64,000 nt of DNA, taken from positions 12,462,001 to 12,526,000 of the forward strand of contig OU015566.1 in assembly GCA_907165135.1 (NCBI GenBank). Direction: 5' to 3'. Below, piece by piece: positions 14,497 through 53,114 of this stretch; positions within the stretch are counted from its first letter, which is position 1, and every line of letters starts with the position of its first letter. This stretch comes from Oikopleura dioica (Eukaryota; Animalia; Chordata). The position numbers and the translations under genes are program-made. Under the pieces are notes generated by a model that saw nothing but the letters and a program-made list of their open reading frames with translations, was not told where the DNA came from and did no database searches.

Positions 14497-16623
14497 ATGA
14501 TGGTTGATGTTATAGATGCAGGTTTCGAAATGCTGGACGTTACGGTAGAGACAAAGCTAGAACACGACCAAATAGGTATTCATAAACTCAAGCGTTGTTG
14601 ATCGAGCAATTTCGCGTTCAGATGTCTCCTGGGAGTGGAAGGGTGATGGATGCGCCCCGACTGGCTATTTGATAAAATGGGCGGATCGGGAGGAGCAGCT
14701 TGCGGCTGATAAGAGAAGATATCAACTGCCCATCGAGGACCAGACAGCGCTCGTGGTCACACTCCAGACCATGGGCGAGTCAAGGTGAGTTCTAAATTTA
14801 GCCCTTTCTCTCTGTGGCCTAGTTACTGTCGGTTTCACATGATAAGCCATCGATTTCTCCTGCTAGAAAGACCAACACACCCGTAAATTCTCGATTCAGC
14901 GTCGAATACAACTCCTTTGTCAACATCCGCGGCCCCAAATTAGACAAGGCGAAAGAAGAAGCAATGACACTTATCATGGTAAAACGCTCCCACGAGCTTT
15001 TTGAATGCTTATCAGAACAACCTAACACAACCTACAGCGACGAAAAGCTGAGCTGCTAAGGGACATCGCCCGCGTTCGCCGAGATTTGGAAGAAAACGCC
15101 AGAGAAGTCGCCTTTTTTACCGACCCAGAGAGATTCAAGGAGCGCTCCGAGCAGAACAAATCCAGGTACATCCTTCAAAAATAGCCACAAGACTGGAAAT
15201 CCCGATTTAGAGAGCTCAAAACAGCTGTACGAAAGTTCAACCAAAAGCCAAAACGTGGCCTTGAGCAGTTCATCCAGCACAATTACGTGGATGAATCACC
15301 AAAATCAATCACAAAATTCCTTCTCAACCAAAAAGGACTTTCCAAATCCGCCATTGGCGAGTTGCTCGGCGAGCCGGATCAAAAATATCTTGATATTCTC
15401 GGTACTTCGTTTCTAGTGCATTATTATGTAACAAAATTGAAAAGAGCAATTTGTCGTGGCGATTGATTTCACTGGATTAGATCTTGTTGAAGCTCTGAGA
15501 AGATATCTATCGAAATTCAAGCTTCCTGGAGAAGCTCAGAAGATCGACAGGATTATTGAGACTTTTTCTAAAGGGTAAGTCCTTATTTGACATCTCTGTG
15601 TATCTAGATGCGCATTAATGTCTATGGATACCTTTAGATGTTTCTGAACACCTCTAAATTTCCCATAATATCTCATTTCTAAGAGGCCCCCTTTTTAGAT
15701 ACACAAATTGCAACCCCACCGTCTTTTCTTCATCGGACACCTGTTACGTCATTGCCTTTTCTATCATTCTGCTAAATACCTCGCTACACAACCCCAATGT
15801 CAAAGAAAAACCGACCGAAGACCGTTTCATTCGAATGTGCGCCGGAATCGATGGCGGAAACGATCTTCCCGCATCACAATTAGGAAGTTACTTCAAAAGT
15901 ATAAACAAGAATCCCTTCAAACTGCCGGAGGAAGAAGATCAAGCCTTTGGTAAGTCATCAGAGCTCGTTTAAAAGTGCTAAAATGAGTGTAGCTAATGTC
16001 TTGTACAATCCGGACAAAGAGGGTTTTCTCTACAAACTTGGAGGAAAGATAAAGGGATGGAAGCGGCGCTGGATTGTGCTTACGGAAAAGGTTTGCTCAA
16101 AAAACCTGTTTTAAGGGGGTAGACAACGATATTTCAGACGCTGTATTACTTCGAAGAAGCAAAAGATCGAGAGCCAAAAGGCATCATTCCTTTGAACAAC
16201 GTCCAAGTCCGCAAGTGCGACGAAAAAGGCAGGAACTTCTGCTTCGAGCTGTACAAAGAGCAAGAACTTCCAATGATGACTATCAAGGTACTTTTTAAAA
16301 AGTGCTTTTGATTGATTTATTCTCGATTCTAGGACGTGAAAATCAATCCAGACGGAAAAGTAATCGATGGAAATCTTGGTACGAAGAGTCCTATTATCCG
16401 CTTTTCCGCGCCGACAGAAGACGATCTCGACGACTGGGTTTCTACCATCAAAAAGTAAGGAGAAAGAGTTGTGTTCATGTCTTACGGACCCAATTTCAGA
16501 TGTTTGGGACGAGATCCGATGTACGACCTAATTGCGGATCGCCGCCGCCGCGCAGGTTCTATACGACAGCCGAACGCAATAAATCAAGCCAAATCAACCG
16601 ATATTCCTTCAACGAAAAATTAG
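14497..16623 (+). CDS. CYTH: Cytohesin/ARNO-family Arf-GEF (Sec7 + PH) with extended N-terminus
   Basis: Sec7 [35 protein letters not shown]; [29 protein letters not shown]; C-terminal [13 protein letters not shown]. 5' end uncertain. Confidence 0.9.
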
Positions 16624-45000: not shown

Positions 45001-46279
45001 GACCCGTTTCGTCCACTGGAGTCGTTCCTGGACTTTCTGTTCCAGCCAGGACCTCGCCCAACAATCCTCAAAGTACTGGTGAGTACAGGGAGAAAGTAGA
45101 CAGCTGATAAAGATCCAAGTCATTTCATTAGCTTATGAATTGAATTTTAATTTCCTTGGTGTTTTTTTAATCGCAATTGTTGATTAAGAGTTATTATTCA
45201 AGAGAACTGCTCCTTATGCTAATTTGGGGAATATTTTCTGAATAAAAGAATCCAAATTCTATAAACGTTTCAATTTATATTTGATTGACGAAGATATCCG
45301 TTCAATAATAACCGTGACAATTATTTTAATTTATGCTTCAGGACAAATGGGCTCCATCTCTGCGCCAGGTCAAGGTCGATCCGGCTCAATTGGCAACGTC
45401 CGCACTGCTGGACTCGGGCATCAGCCTTACTCCCAGCATGAAAATATCATGGTAAGAATAGCTCACAGTCGCACGCGTTCTGTCTAATCGTCTAAATGTT
45501 TTCATTTTTGTAGTTCGAGGACTCGTATCATCCTAAGTCCTATCCGTCCTATTTGGAGGTAAAGGAGCATTTGATTGATCATTTTACTTTTGTTTCTTCT
45601 TTTCCTTTCAATTTTAATCTAACAAAAAATTAATACCCGCGTCGCCAGAATCAAACAAAAATCAACGAAAAAGTTCATCTTTTTGTCGATGGGTTTTCAA
45701 AAGTATTGTTTTAGTATCAGCCATCGATGAATCAAGGATACGACATGATCCAAATTCAACGACCGAATGTGTCGAGACATTCTGACGATGGTCTTCGAAG
45801 TCAGGGACTTGGCGGATTCCAGGCTTTCACTGGTTCCATTCAGGAATGTGGGTTGAAATAAACGAAGAAACTCTTCATATAGTCATGGCTTTGAATCTCT
45901 TTTCAACCCATTTTGAAGCCACAACAATACTACGCGCCTATCCCACAGTACTACCCAATGACTGTGCAGCGTTCAAGTAAGCCTCAGCACCCCAAATTCA
46001 CCAGTCTTACCCTTTTCTTCCATTTTAGGTTCCGCTTATGCTCCAATGTACTCGTCCGCTCAGGCGGGTAACACGACAGACTCAATGCGAAGCATGAGAA
46101 CTCAGCAACAAGAGACGCCCCCACCATTTCTGTCGACAAATGCCTACGGCCAGGTATGCCGATCCTTGCGGCGCGAGTAACTCTTTCTTTAGGGCTTTCC
46201 AAACATCCTGATTCCTCCAGGAGCGAGTGCCCAGCTCGGGCCTCATGGCCAGCACCCAGACAACCGAGGACCTCGTTAG
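42098..46279 (+). CDS. UBAP2: UBAP2/UBAP2L (lingerer) homologue
   Basis: PTADQLRIATM..LERKIKQVTEFTG..ALYDCDNDI UBA-like domain; RGG box; FVFGN motif; long Q/P/S-rich tail over many exons. End approximate. Confidence 0.85.
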
Positions 46280-47515
46280 TCTTCTTTTTGGATATGTAAT
46301 TATGTTTTACATATGTAAATTGACCAAGGCTACGCTCCTCTCTCGCTGGATTAAAAACTGGTCGGGAAGAATCTCCTCAAAAATAAAATAAAAAATAATA
46401 TTGTTTTCTCCTGTTTCCGTCTCTGTCTGCCCCCTCCCCCCAAAAATCTCGTGTTCCTTTCGGTACACTTTCAAAATGCTAAGAATCTAAAATTGGATGA
46501 TCCACCAAAAACTCAAAAATCTGGTGTTGATCTCCACGCTCAAACCAAAAAAAAAAGAATAATTCCCTGTTCGTCTGTTCATTCCCACTAGGCCAATTTT
46601 ATTCGTTAGGTTCATTTTTCCTCAAGACTTCATTAAATTTTCACTCTCTAAAACTACATGTAGCTGCCTGTACTCAATTCAAGTCTAAATTTTTGTCGCA
46701 CAGGGCGGCTTTTACATCTTCTACTCTTCTTCTTTTTTCACGGTCTCAGTAAAGAGATTGCGGATTTCTTCCTGACAAGATAATAAACCAACAGAATATT
46801 CATCCCTCCTGTGTTACGCCCTTGTTTAAAGTAAACTTGCTTATCAAAAGACACTAGAAAAGCTAGAAAAGAGCAGCAGCCTAACTCAACTCAACCTATC
46901 CATTCAAAAACCTCAAGAAAACGAAAACGAGGCAGAAATATACTTGAGATTATGCACTCTTTGAACTCCCACAGACGCCCCGTAACTGCCACCTGAGGTC
47001 GCCATGTGCAACACATTTTTTATCGTGAGTACTCATTTTACAGTAAACAAAAATACAGTCGTACTAAAGTCAAATCCAACTTGTTCAAATTTCCCCTACT
47101 ATTACTTCTTTGAGACACTTTACCGTTCGAATCCCCCCAAAGATACTGTATCGTGAGTGTACTTTGTGTTAAAAGTTAAAGAGCTTCAGTTACATCACGC
47201 TGCGATAAAAAATAATAAAATATCGGAATTATGTGAGACTCGATTGAAAGAAAAACTCCAAAAAGCAAGCTTTTCTTTGTGGAGAGTATACTCTCTGTCG
47301 TCAATGAGTTCTAAAGAAGCATCACAAGAGAATAAAATTGGTATAATTGCAATGTATCTCGCAAATAATTTGATGGAGTATGTTGTGTAACTACATTTTA
47401 CATAAAGAAGGTTCTTTGATATACGCGCGTGTTGTAAAATATTCTACTTATATTATCAGCTCGTTTCATAATTTCAATCGACTTGATTTCACGCAAGAAT
47501 AATCGCAGTTTATTC

Positions 47516-49906
47516 TCAGGCCAGGAGACTATTTTCAGCAATTCTTTCCAGCAAAAGCTTCGATTTAGTCCAAATATAGCTCCTTTCATCCTCAGTTCTG
47601 AGGTTTTCCTCCAAGATCTTGTCAATTCCTTCATCCACAAACTGCTTACAATACTGAAAGCAGGCTAAATTAGTTGTTACGCAGAAGTTTGTGTACTTTG
47701 TCGACGGATTTCGCAGAAAATTCTTCTTCAAATGGGTGGGTAAGCTGAGACCATCGCCAACAAAAGAACCATCGAATCGGCTTTGATCCATTTTCAATGA
47801 GTTTGAGGAGGTCTTTGAATGTCCTGTAGCTCATACGAGCTGGTAGGCTCTCCGGAAGGAGTTCGATCAGGAAGCAGAATTTATTCTCAAGCTCCGATCG
47901 TTCTATAAAATTGGGAAGCTCGATGTCTTCATGAGCCAGAATCGTGGACATTACTTCGAGTCCATTCGTAAACCCATCCATTTTTTCATTTTCAACGGAA
48001 ATCTCATGGTCTTCGACGGAATTGATCGACGCCATAAGCATCAACATTAAATCTGTATGTTATGTTTTATTATATAAGATTGAATGTAATTACCAGCCGA
48101 CATGATTTCGCGCGTCATATCCTTGTCCGAAACAATATTTCCAATGAAGCCCGTGATATTGTAACGAAAAGCGTCGTGCTTTTCAGACATGGGGAGAATC
48201 TTTTCAATGAAGTTAGAAGCGACCAGTTTCTTCTTGTCCTTCTTATCTTCAGGTTCAAAGAGAATCAAAGGCAAGCAAAGCTTATCATCTGAACCTTCCC
48301 TGATTTGTATCAATATAGTTCCAGAAGATTGAGAGAATTCGGAGGAACAAGTTCCAATCATTCGCCATCGCTTTGTCCGAAAGCACCATTAATCTATCCA
48401 CAAAATTTGTATCCTCTGGTAGTTCGTTTGCTAATTCCACTGAAAGTTGAGAGGAGAAACAATTGCTGATGATCACTGCGGCCATAACTTTAAACCCTGG
48501 GTCCTCATCATATTCTTCCAGAACTTGGAGACACGCTTCAACGACTTCTGAGCCGAAGCTATTGCCGTACTTATCCACAGGTACGTGAGTGAGAGCCTTG
48601 ATTATGTTATAAATAAACTGATTCGCGATGGGTTTTCCTTTATGCTGTAAAATTGCTTTGCAAAAAGAAGCAGCCATTCGTTCAATTTGATCATCCGAGA
48701 TTTCGTCACTATTTGCAACGATGAAAAACATCGATGCAGACAAGTTTAGTGCCAAAGAAATATCATCCAAAGAGTAGAAGCGTTCAAAGGCTGATAGGGC
48801 GTCTTCCATAAATTTTGATGGATAGGGCGATAGAGGAATAACCTCGTACAAATCATTCCAATATTTGTTAAGCTTTTCTGGATCGTTGGCCGGCTACACG
48901 ACGTTTTGACTAAAGCGACGTTCTCGCTAACCGACGTTTTCGCTAAACCGACGTTCTCACTAAAAGTCAAAACGTCGGTTTAGTCAAAACGTCGGTTTAG
49001 TCAGAACGTCGGTTTTCCTTAAATATGCGGGGGCAATCAGAGCGAATGAGAATTGGCTCTTCCTGGATTAAAAATTCTGTCTAAAGCCCGCCGTCTTTCT
49101 CAAACCGAAACTTTCCTTAAATTGTTAACTTGGAAAAACAAAATATATATTTTTGAATTAATTATTATAAAATTATTATTTGAATAACAAAATCAATAAT
49201 TTTAAAAAATATTAAGTCTGCATAATTTACTGATCTTTTTACATTTTATCGGTCTTGAGATCATTTTTAAAAGATTTATTTTAGTTATATTCGTTAATTT
49301 AATGAAGATATTCATTATTCTTATACTTTTACTCTTCACAAAGATTTTTCGAAAGAAAATGAAAACGTCGGTTTGACGAAAACATCGGTTTCCAAACTGA
49401 GTCTTAACCAAATTCAAGGCGCCCACGCATTTTTAAGGAAAACCGACGTTTTGACTAAACCGACGTTTTGACTAAACCGACGTTTTGACTTTTGGTGAGA
49501 ACGTCGGTTTAGCGAAAACGTCGGTTAGCGAGAACGTCGGTTTAGTCAAAACGTCGTGTAGCCTCGTTGGCCGCTTCTCTGACGGGTGCAAGAATCTCGT
49601 CAATAGACGACAGTCTTCCTTGACAATTGATTCGATGTTCTTCGTAGTTTGAGTACTGAAGGATGGCTTCAGAACAATCTTCGCATTTGATTGTGAGCTC
49701 GTTTGTTTTCTCGAACCATTCTTTTGGAGGCGATTTCAAGTAAGAAACATTGTCATAGTTGATGTGGATTTTGCAGTTCGGGCATTTGTTGTCGTTGTTA
49801 GCAACTTCGATTCGGAAGCAGGGTAGACAAAAGACTTTGGGGCAGCTTTGGCAGACTTTTGGTTTTTCCGATATTTTGTCGCATAACAAACAGGTGAGAT
49901 CAGGAT
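47516..49906 (-). CDS. RING + TRAF-like zinc finger fused to a ZYG11/ZER1-like ARM domain; interrupted by a 672-bp foldback element (5' start unresolved)
   Basis: CLLC..CQSC..FCLPC..CPNC, CEDC..EEHRINC; then MAAVIIS, IFWNYID, FIGNIV, YCKQFVDEG, which match the ZYG11 ARM. Removing the insert makes one continuous frame. Confidence 0.75.
48892..49563. mobile_element. Non-autonomous foldback/Mutator-like element, 143-bp TIRs, 9-bp TSD; candidate introner
   Basis: TIRs 48892-49034 and 49421-49563 (about 5 mismatches by eye) built from AAACCGACGTTTTGACT-type subrepeats; TSD TCGTTGGCC at 48883-48891 and 49564-49572; AT-rich core. Confidence 0.95.
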
Positions 49907-50364
49907 CTACAAAGGGATAAGTAGAGGCTTTTATATTTGAAAAACTGAGGCTGAGCCTTTAATCAATAAAAGAGATTTATATATTTTCGTGAATAAGTAC
50001 CAATTTGATCTTTTGGTTCAATATTTTCTAGAGAAATTCCCATTCTCTCGAAGTTTTAATAAGGAACTGCAAATAGGATACTGGTTTTGAGCCTGTGAAA
50101 AGCAAATAACCTGACATTTGATATGAGCTTCGCAAATATTTACAACGCTTAGATTTTACCAAGATTCTTTTTTCCAATTACCAGTCTTATTTTGATCAAA
50201 ACAGCACTTGGAAAATGTATCAATCTATTCTTCTCTTGAAGCTCTCGAGCCCCACCAGCCGTCAAAAAAATCTCCATAAATATGCGACGAGCGGGTGCTT
50301 AGATATCATAAGCTTCTAGACAAGCATAACATAAAGCAAAACCCACCAATCTTCAACAATAAAG

Positions 50365-50574
50365 ATGAACGTTCTTTCCATCTTCTTCCTCTTTTTCTCT
50401 TCCACCAACGCCTTCGACCACAGAAGCCAGGCTCAAGCCTCAGCTCAACACATTCGAGCCATGCTAAGACGCAACACCCCCTTCATCAAAATCCAGGACA
50501 AATCTCCAAGGCGAAAAAACCAACGTCTCATCAGCAGACTTGAAAAACTCTACTCAAAACACTTGTTTCGATGA
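50365..50574 (+). CDS. Small basic secreted peptide (69 aa, single exon)
   Basis: Signal peptide MNVLSIFFLFFSSTNA; RR and RRK sites. Confidence 0.5.
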   Translation: MNVLSIFFLFFSSTNAFDHRSQAQASAQHIRAMLRRNTPFIKIQDKSPRRKNQRLISRLEKLYSKHLFR

Positions 50575-50691
50575 ACCATAGTTTCTGCTTCACAAAATAA
50601 AAAGCATGGAAAAAAAATTATATATATTTATTAGATATCTTTGAAAATTGAGTATGAATATCATCACGATGTTCATCATGATTTATGATTG

Positions 50692-52044
50692 TCAGGAGGT
50701 ACAGACATTTGAAGTTGAAACAAATAGGGTCGGATACCAATTTTTTGATCCATGGTCAGCAAAAATATCAGTCGAGAGAACATTTTCATTTTTATCTTAG
50801 TGAAGGTTGTAAAGACATTTCTATGAAAAAGTTAATGCGAAACCAAGAATATACTATGAATCTTTATAAGTTTGAGACCTTCACCTAGAAAAGCACGCTG
50901 AATCGAAACTTTAGGGGAAACAGATGAGCCGGGGAATACGAAAATAACATTGTCGATAAATATAACGGATGAATAGTGAATTTTCTTTAAAAAATGAGTT
51001 AATTTTTTCCGTCAAAGATAATTAACTAGATTGATATAATATTTGTATGTTTACCTCCGGCAAGTTCCCGACTAAAGACCAATTGTCATTCTTTAATCGC
51101 CAAATGTCATTCAATCGGTCCCAAATCTGATCATCAAATCCTCCAACAGTCAGAAGGTCTCCTGAAGGTAGTCCGATAGCAGGAGCATTCCGTATCCCTC
51201 TTAAATATCTCATACAATAAATATTTCTATCTTGACTACTTTGGATGGCTGGAAAGCGATTTCCATCCATCATTTTCCAGGGTTTCAGTAGCCCCGTATG
51301 AATACCATCCTCCAACAGCAGTTGGCCGACCATTGTAGCTTCCCAACGCACCATACTGGTGCTTAATTTTCGTTCCTGATGCGTGAACAACGCTGGAGCC
51401 GTCAAAACGCTCGCATGCTTTGTAAGATTTCTCTTCAAAGCAAATTATAGCTCAAAAATAAACTTCTATAAATCCGAGTCTTAAATTACGCAGTACCTTC
51501 ACTACCTCCCTCAAAACTGAGGGCGTCATGTTTAAGCATATATTCATTATTGAGGCGCGATGATAGTTCTGTGAATGCACATTCGTCCAAGCGATAAATC
51601 TTCAAGAAATTATTATGACTTTTTTAATTTAGGTTATCTCATTACGCTTTGCATGTTTCTTTGGCCTCCGAAAGTGTGTAAAAGACCATTGATTAAAGCG
51701 TGTTTCGATTGGTACAAAAAGCCATAATCGGTGTCTTTTCATAGGATTTTTACAGCTTTTTTTCTATTAAATTATCGATTTAAAACAATAAGTAAAAATC
51801 CCTGGTCTGAAGATGGAGGATTAATCATTAAATTTTTGGTAATTGATCCATCACTCTTCAATGCATAAGGCAAAAAGTCTGAAGATAGAACATTAATCTG
51901 GGTTGATTGCTCCGCTGAATAAATGAAGTTTTTGATTTCGGTCCGCCGATCAAATTTTAAAAGCCGGACCCTCATGTTTTTCTCCTTATCGAATTCAAAC
52001 AATTCTAATGCAAAGGTTTTTGTTTGCATCTGATCTATTTTCAA
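50692..52044 (-). CDS. Kelch-like beta-propeller protein (multi-exon; 5' end unresolved)
   Basis: Spliced reading LINGLLHTFGG..RLDECAF..IICF..CERFDG..HQYGALGSYNGRPTAVGG..GWKSLSSHP..GLPSGDLLTVGG..WYPTLFVSTSNVCTS*. Confidence 0.65.
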
Positions 52045-53114
52045 CTGCGAATGTCAAAAGCGCGTTCTTTGTTAAAAAGTAGAAAATAAAACTCAAAATG
52101 GAAAAATGAAAATATTTCCTGAATGCTTAAAATCGTGGAATTGAAGGCATTCTGAGCGAGATGCATCTCGAATTTTGTCCATTGAAATAAATCTCCTTCC
52201 AAGATCAATTTATCGCTAAAGTAATCAGAAGCTATCCAAAAAGATCCATTTGTTAAAAATCCCAGATTAAAGAATGATTTTCTGTTAAATAACTGACAGT
52301 CTAGCTGAGTTTGATTGTCGATTTTAAATCCAGTTTCTCGCTAAAAGTTTTTGATAGATATAATATTTAATTGACTTTTAAAGTTACTTTTAAATAAAAC
52401 CGCAACGTCCATATTTGAGAATCTTTGTTAGCTGCATAATTCAATTCAAAAGTCGAAACATGCTTGAACTCCTCAAGCGAAGTGAATGGCTTGTCTTCGA
52501 AAGAACCTGGTATGATTGTTTTTGGATATGGTTTCAAGCTCGACCTTGCCGACTCAGGAAACCGCGGCTGGGAGGCGGCATTTTTCGCAAAGGCGGGAAA
52601 GACATCGTCGTGAAAGGCAAACAAGGGGTTGCTTGTCACGTACATTTTCTCCTTTACATCCTGCTGTACGTAATTTATCTCAATTAGATCTTGTATTTCG
52701 GATTTGCTTTTTTCCCATTACTAGGCATAGAGTCTGCTGCATTCTGCTTTATCATTAACAAGATATTAGTTATTTAATTGATAGTCAATCCTTTCCAAAG
52801 TTAAATTCAATTTCGAGAGTTGCGTCAAAAACATAATTTTGGATATAAAATTTCTCGTTGCTTATGATTCCGTTTGTGAAATAGTCGCATTCATCGTTGT
52901 TGAGCCCACTCTGATCTGTATAGTTCGGGTCATCAGAAGCGAACAATTTTGAAACGCAGAAAGATCTTTCGTCGTATTTAACCAGAGAACCAATCCATTC
53001 GCTGCCAAGATTCAAAAATTTTCCTTCGGCTTCGAGAAGCAACGAGTACTGAGTATTTGAGAGAGCGATACTTCTTGTCACCAGAATAAGAAACAGCCGA
53101 TTTAAGTCAATCTG

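Follow-up and report, generated by a model that had tools for sequence, protein, structure and literature searches.

A 672-nt foldback-type DNA transposon in a coding exon of Oikopleura dioica, with candidate splice sites in its inverted repeats

Transposon-derived introns and the Oikopleura locus

The introner elements of Micromonas and Aureococcus were reportedly described by Huff, Zilberman and Roy in 2016. Such elements are short non-autonomous DNA transposons that lie in genes, carry terminal inverted repeats (TIRs) and target site duplications (TSDs), and offer potential splice sites at their ends; they occur as many near-identical copies and are demonstrably spliced. Introner families have been surveyed (PMC9860276), and for other lineages, in which introns were gained in bursts, the leading explanation is transposon insertion (PMC9860276, PMC11282704). 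In Micromonas, as summarised in PMC11282704, the introner contributes one of the two splice sites and the other comes from the TSD, which makes its removal scarless. Another system is found in Fritillaria borealis, where non-canonical introns derive from MITEs (Henriet et al. 2019, as summarised in PMC11282704; PMC13326754); these introns are numerous, mostly have AG-AC or AG-AT borders and are supported by RNA. The birth of introns from transposons is already established (Huff 2016; PMC9860276), larvaceans included (Henriet 2019, as summarised in PMC11282704; PMC13326754).

Genomes of the Oikopleura type show massive intron turnover (PMC8008620). The median intron of Oikopleura dioica measures 49 nt (PMC8008620), introns with borders other than GT-AG make up 11-12% (PMC8008620, PMC7072748), and GA-AG introns are especially frequent (PMC7072748).

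We analysed a stretch of 64,000 nucleotides of O. dioica (assembly GCA_907165135.1, contig OU015566.1, positions 12,462,001 to 12,526,000 of the forward strand), here called the window, in which positions are counted from the first letter. A sequence-only reading of this stretch had proposed that a 672-bp element interrupts a coding exon and behaves as an introner, with splice sites in its TIR ends. All coordinates, lengths and sequence statements of that reading are correct. Its assignment of introner status is unsupported, as no second copy was found where we searched, the proposed donor matches only four of nine consensus positions, and about fifty further in-frame splice site pairs surround the element.

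With introners, the insertion shares its nature as a short non-autonomous DNA transposon with TIRs and a TSD in a gene and with ends that offer potential splice sites, but it is present as a single copy in the window and represents a candidate intron only. Unlike in Micromonas, the element itself contains the two candidate sites, and a scar of 12 nt would remain. The Fritillaria introns have in common with this locus the larvacean type of genome, the terminal inverted repeats, the non-GT borders and a tolerant spliceosome, whereas here we have one young element of 672 nt with a putative GC-AG intron.

Anatomy of the element and its family

The insertion and its anatomy are directly demonstrated: a DNA transposon lies within a coding exon. 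Based on its TIRs, TSD and subrepeats, it is a non-autonomous element of the foldback type, 672 nt long (48892 to 49563; this feature and its parts are unstranded). Its two TIR arms of 143 nt each are located at 48892 to 49034 (the 3' arm in the host transcript) and 49421 to 49563 (the 5' arm), and they enclose an AT-rich spacer of 386 nt (49035 to 49420) that holds two further subrepeat copies at 49356-49391. The inverted-repeat tool reported 97% complementarity between the arms; counted directly, there are five mismatches (arm positions 24, 70, 113, 133 and 139), so that none falls within the outermost 23 nt. The terminal 19-mer GGCTACACGACGTTTTGAC was detected in two exact copies in the 64-kb window, one at each end of the element and inverted with respect to each other, where 0.04 would be expected by chance.

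At the two borders of the element lie the copies of a perfect direct repeat, TCGTTGGCCG, at 48883-48892 and 49564-49573, which spans 10 bp when the last base of the TIR is included. Because the inverted repeat extends through the tenth base, we read the TSD as 9 bp rather than 10 (GGCCAACGA on the gene strand), with its copies at 48883 to 48891 (downstream in the gene) and 49564 to 49572 (upstream). A 17-nt subrepeat, AAACCGACGTTTTGACT, has together with its variants eight matches in the window, all of them within the element (0 expected). The subrepeats follow one another with a period of 17 nt in blocks of three to four copies, and each arm is composed of one direct and one inverted block, so that each arm is in itself a hairpin or palindrome. 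This anatomy of TIRs, TSD and subrepeats is far beyond chance. The open reading frames of the element are all short (the longest has 74 amino acids), and the AT-rich core shows no sign of a transposase gene.

The combination of a 9-bp TSD, long TIRs with tandem subrepeats and no coding capacity fits the hallmarks of Foldback and Mutator-like non-autonomous elements, in agreement with the Mutator-like family first suggested for this element from its TSD and TIRs. Shared with Foldback (FB) and Mutator-like (MULE) elements are the 9-bp TSD, the 143-nt TIRs built from short tandem subrepeats, the absence of coding sequence and the ability to snap back into a hairpin; one departure from them is that the arms are palindromic in themselves, being composed of direct and inverted subrepeats. 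The TSDs of hAT elements are 8 bp long, those of Tc1, PIF and piggyBac elements 2-4 bp, and Merlin elements make TSDs of 8-9 bp. A TSD of 9 bp thus excludes hAT and the superfamilies with 2-4-bp TSDs and is still compatible with Merlin. This superfamily assignment draws only on TSD length and TIR architecture; neither an autonomous partner nor a transposase was found in the window.

Scans of the 64-kb window with the subrepeat and with the terminal 19-mer revealed no second copy of the element. A GCTACAC...GTGTAGC pair at 15783-15993 was considered as an old copy and dismissed as a chance match, since neither an extended inverted repeat nor a TSD accompanies it. Metagenome contigs scanned for a doubled-subrepeat pattern yielded 0 loci. 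A triple-core subrepeat pattern gave 58 loci in the metagenome contigs and 0 in viral contigs, and when the element was compared by BLAST with the 58 loci, only matches of 46-59 nt with 76-85% identity were obtained, none of which represents a family copy.

The host gene and the age of the insertion

The element interrupts a five-exon gene on the minus strand, whose structure we derived with an orthologue as guide and which encodes a RING/TRAF-like zinc finger followed by a ZER1-like ARM domain. Exon 1 (50001 to 50043, minus strand, as are all exons and introns given here) starts with ATG GGA ATT, a start conserved in the orthologue. It is followed by a GT-AG intron of 94 nt (49907 to 50000), at the place of which the orthologous contig L002 has an intron of 38 nt. 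Exon 2 (48299 to 49906) encodes the zinc finger, the linker and the start of the ARM domain, and is the exon interrupted by the element. Intron 2 (48247 to 48298, 52 nt) has the non-canonical borders GA-AG; here the orthologue likewise has an intron, which can be read as GA-AG or GG-AG. Exon 3 (48094 to 48246) shares 73% amino acid identity with the orthologue, and the GT-AG intron 3 behind it (48053 to 48093, 41 nt) is again placed as in the orthologue. Exon 4 (47697 to 48052), a further GT-AG intron (47654 to 47696, 43 nt) and exon 5 with the stop codon (47516 to 47653) complete the gene. Introns of 41-94 nt, one of them GA-AG, and orthologous DNA in marine metagenomes are what a larvacean tunicate would show. 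The N-terminal cysteine-rich RING/TRAF-like zinc finger has a weak Pfam match, and in the orthologue the downstream part scores 27.3 bits with the Pfam model ZER1-like_2nd, slightly above the cut-off of 27. The host is a RING/TRAF-like gene of the E3-ligase type.

As protein query we used the 202-amino-acid piece encoded downstream of the element. Compared exhaustively with 1.84 billion representative proteins, it retrieved a single relative, the cluster P0001 at 59% identity, and a word-index search retrieved the same one. An exact protein look-up with one open reading frame from the later exons gave no match, and apart from this 59% orthologue cluster the protein collections searched contained nothing of the same lineage that could represent an empty-site allele, a carrier allele or a transcript. 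Clustered at 90%, P0001 comprises seven proteins, all of which come from marine metagenome assemblies (Logan, ENA and JGI). The corresponding contigs, L001-L004, carry genomic sequence and remain collinear with the window for about 5 kb, a span that takes in neighbouring genes, and we therefore regard P0001 as the syntenic orthologue from a related lineage.

The orthologue also shows the site in its uninterrupted form. Window positions 49563 and 48887 align to the adjacent bases 1604 and 1605 of contig L002, from which the element is absent, and all seven orthologous protein variants run continuously through the site (...SKKAR[Y/F/T]ENDPEKLN...). The orthologous exon is uninterrupted in L001-L004, hence the site is intron-less in the relatives, which fits a recent gain. 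Placement of the 672-bp element in a coding exon, as read from the letters of the window, is thus borne out by its 143-nt TIRs, its perfect TSD and an orthologue that is uninterrupted at exactly this codon.

Deletion of the element together with one TSD joins ...REAANDPEKLNKYW... and restores the frame, as had been claimed, to a complete open reading frame of 538 amino acids, which we take as the empty site. An error of assembly, such as a chimera or the collapse of a repeat, is hardly credible as the origin of the interruption. Long hairpins can trouble assemblers, but nothing specific points to such an error, and true transposition has the signature observed here, a 9-bp TSD without mismatch and a conserved reading frame that is exactly restored upon removal.

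Judged by its reading frame, the host gene is intact apart from the element. At first sight the frame seems to change twice downstream, as it would if the host were already a decaying pseudogene and the insertion a further neutral lesion, and the gene carries no RNA reads. This view is highly improbable: the two changes are tiny introns, one with GA-AG borders (52 nt) and one with GT-AG borders (41 nt), that are placed as in the orthologue, so that the notion of two frameshifts is rejected, and the open reading frame is complete from ATG to stop. The RNA runs are equally devoid of reads on the neighbouring sequence and are hence uninformative on expression. A perfect TSD, two ends that agree over their first 23 nt and a host open reading frame free of other lesions lead us to infer that the allele is young.

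The insertion site falls in the least conserved stretch of the protein, the linker between the zinc-finger and ARM domains. Relative to the orthologue, the empty-site protein is two residues shorter and the product of the proposed GC-AG intron two residues longer, and both fit equally well. The linker already varies in length between orthologues, so that it would tolerate the gain or loss of a few residues.

Candidate splicing of the element

In unspliced RNA, translation would end at a premature TAA (49542 to 49544, minus strand, codon 136), and the product of 135 amino acids, ending in ...EAANEATRRFD, would contain the zinc finger only. The stop at 49542 and the loss of everything behind the RING part had already been recognised from the sequence. 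The hypothetical GC-AG intron of 669 nt (48894 to 49562, minus strand; GAG/GCTACA ... GTGTAG/CC) would remove this stop. The arithmetic put forward for it is correct: 3 nt of the element and the 9-nt TSD are left, a gain of 12 nt, and the predicted RNA junction GCCAACGAG/CCGGCCAACGAT gives ...EAANEPANDPEK..., which encodes four extra residues (EAANE-PANDPEK) in a complete open reading frame of 542 amino acids. It was further argued that the symmetry of the TIRs creates the same sites in either orientation, and this holds as arithmetic, because both sites lie within identical termini, so that 3 + 9 = 12 nt remain whatever the orientation or phase of the insertion.

The signals at these sites are poor, as the sequence-only reading conceded. 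The donor GAG/GCTACA matches the U1 consensus CAG/GTAAGT at four of nine positions (-2, -1, +1 and +4 only), and the acceptor GTCGTGTAG is not preceded by a pyrimidine tract, of which intron 3 of the host also has little. An intron of 669 nt would exceed the median of O. dioica more than tenfold. The organism does splice non-GT introns, as seen in the GA-AG intron of 52 nt in the host gene; the donor of this intron (G/GAAGGT) partly retains the consensus at +3 to +6, which the proposed donor does not. Around the element we counted about fifty other in-frame, stop-free G[T/C/A/G]-AG pairs, among them the pairs of the GT donors at 49583 and 49552. Given this number, and as being in frame is a property of about one pair in three, an in-frame pair is to be expected and is not a signature.

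The predicted folds of the element RNA allow both outcomes. The fold of the whole element is a hairpin (-329 kcal/mol, z -25) whose stem, about 160 bp long, pairs the donor with the acceptor. When folded by itself, the arm at 48892-49034 reaches -68.5 kcal/mol (z -9.1) and the arm at 49421-49563 reaches -65.9 kcal/mol (z -10.3), the latter with its first 12 nt, including the proposed donor, unpaired. Taken separately, the arm folds are predicted to leave both candidate splice sites unpaired and near each other. The stem of about 160 bp could mask both sites, or it could feed the RNA into double-strand RNA pathways. As the fold of the whole element could hide the sites and the folds of single arms would expose them, structure argues neither for nor against splicing. 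Matches of the element in Rfam are to hairpin models of miRNA precursors and score 20-40 bits against cut-offs of 49-117, far below threshold, and we do not regard them as meaningful.

We aligned four RNA runs with the same species label to positions 46500-52400, three of them oligo-dT bulk runs (about 1.5-1.8 Gb read each) and one a single-cell run. In total, 15 reads were found, all within 46500-46893 and almost all 90-95% alike, and there were 0 reads on 46894-52400, the runs having been selected by species label only. They probably come from a diverged lineage under this label. The 5.5 kb with 0 reads include both the gene and its upstream neighbour, and the absence of reads is therefore uninformative on splicing or expression.

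Against this background, a nascent intron with exactly the GC-AG borders of the proposed 669-nt intron is quite unlikely. Its sites are present and in frame, its product is complete and only two residues longer than the orthologue within a variable linker, and its position in symmetric termini would cost 12 nt in any orientation or phase. The host gene already has a GA-AG intron, and local hairpins of the arms would keep the sites single-stranded and bring them close. These points are set against a donor with four of nine consensus positions, an acceptor that has no pyrimidine tract, the presence of about fifty other in-frame pairs, 0 reads on the locus in the four RNA runs, and no second family copy in the window, the metagenome contigs or the viral contigs that could reveal a pattern.

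Removal through other cryptic sites, or by skipping of exon 2, each with a variant protein as the outcome, is also unlikely. A GT donor is normally preferred over a GC donor, and two of the in-frame pairs use GT: one joins the donor at 49583 (CCC/GTCAGA) to the TAG acceptor at 48894 and would give ...SIDEILAP-PANDPEK, and the other joins the donor at 49552 to an AG at 48878. Exon 2 starts and ends in phase 1, and skipping it therefore keeps the frame. However, these GT donors are weak as well (three to four of nine consensus positions), the four RNA runs have 0 reads on the locus for these routes too, and without exon 2 the protein would lack the zinc finger and the greater part of the ARM domain.

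In weighing whether the allele is disrupting, we counted on the one side the weak donor, the lack of a pyrimidine tract, the size of the intron, the stem between donor and acceptor and the stop at codon 136. On the other side, we counted the splicing of non-GT introns in this organism, the tolerant linker, the arm folds that expose the sites and the MITE-derived introns of larvaceans.

The allele and its meaning for intron gain

We consider an ordinary young exonic insertion, which makes a disrupting allele and is probably still polymorphic, to be the best explanation of the locus, with a probability of about 60%. On this reading, a cut-and-paste element of the Foldback/Mutator type inserted recently into the poorly conserved, linker-coding part of exon 2, and its 17-nt subrepeats are presumably binding sites of the transposase. 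The element is probably not cleanly removed from most transcripts. The main product would then be the zinc-finger-only protein of 135 amino acids, or the mRNA would be lost to nonsense-mediated decay, and since the product is truncated or the mRNA degraded, the allele would be one of loss of function or a hypomorph. Some in-frame removal by a permissive spliceosome is possible.

Ordinary exonic transposon alleles of the null or hypomorphic kind share with this locus the young insertion, the intact TSD, the premature stop and an otherwise intact host gene. We observed no departure from them; only the permissive splicing of the host leaves room for more. A wider proposal would have the element belong to an active chordate Foldback/Mutator-like family whose symmetric termini contribute one half each of a GC-AG intron, so that any exonic insertion, whatever its orientation or phase, would be spliced out at the cost of four codons; this is very unlikely.

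The locus is one more well-defined candidate among transposon-derived introns, neither a new kind nor a demonstration of intron birth. Alleles of this type, in which a recent insertion still has its intact TSD and the host gene is otherwise undamaged, are those on which the birth of an intron could be watched directly. If the wider proposal were true, an introner that works in either orientation would have been caught here at its birth, and the fast intron gain in Oikopleura would have a concrete source.

Nested structure of the inserted element

The terminal inverted repeat (TIR) arms of the 672-nt foldback-type element (48892-49034 and 49421-49563) are both palindromic, each built of 17-nt subrepeats, four in direct and then three in inverted orientation. 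Folded singly, each arm yields about -66 to -68 kcal/mol. Since each arm is itself a self-folding palindrome, the element is a nested foldback. Rfam returned only sub-threshold matches to it, to hairpins resembling miRNA precursors.

A non-canonical intron and RNA reads near the host gene

Intron 2 of the host gene (48247-48298, minus strand) is 52 nt long and has non-canonical GA-AG borders (CAGG|GAAGGT...CCTGAAG|AT); no other G*-AG solution for this intron keeps the frame. The orthologue on marine-metagenome contig L001 carries an intron at the same position (about 1012-1084). As GAAG recurs at its two borders, this intron allows either a GA-AG or a GG-AG reading.

Across the mapped region 46500-52400, the RNA runs labelled as the same species gave 15 reads, all within 46500-46893 and almost all 90-95% alike to the window. 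A recurrent joint in the reads omits 46676-46752 and has non-canonical AA..AA ends; it probably stems from a repeat or from reads of a diverged lineage that cross-map here.

Host gene and its neighbours

Microsynteny between 45500-50641 and metagenome contig L002 (542-4985) spans the host gene and neighbours on both sides; the marine-metagenome contigs compared came from ENA ERZ27250226, Logan SRR7620404 and JGI 3300024255. Amino acid identity to these contigs is 80-100% for the downstream neighbour (about 46340-45500) versus about 56% for the host gene, and by this measure the neighbour is much more conserved. Upstream of the host gene, an ORF on the minus strand (51022-51438) that includes ...TVGGFDD... 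looks kelch/beta-propeller-like.

The host protein (47516-50043, minus strand; about 538 aa) combines a RING/TRAF-like zinc finger with a ZER1/ZYG11-like ARM domain. A search of 1.84 billion representative proteins found a single cluster of relatives, so the host gene is fast-evolving and lineage-restricted.
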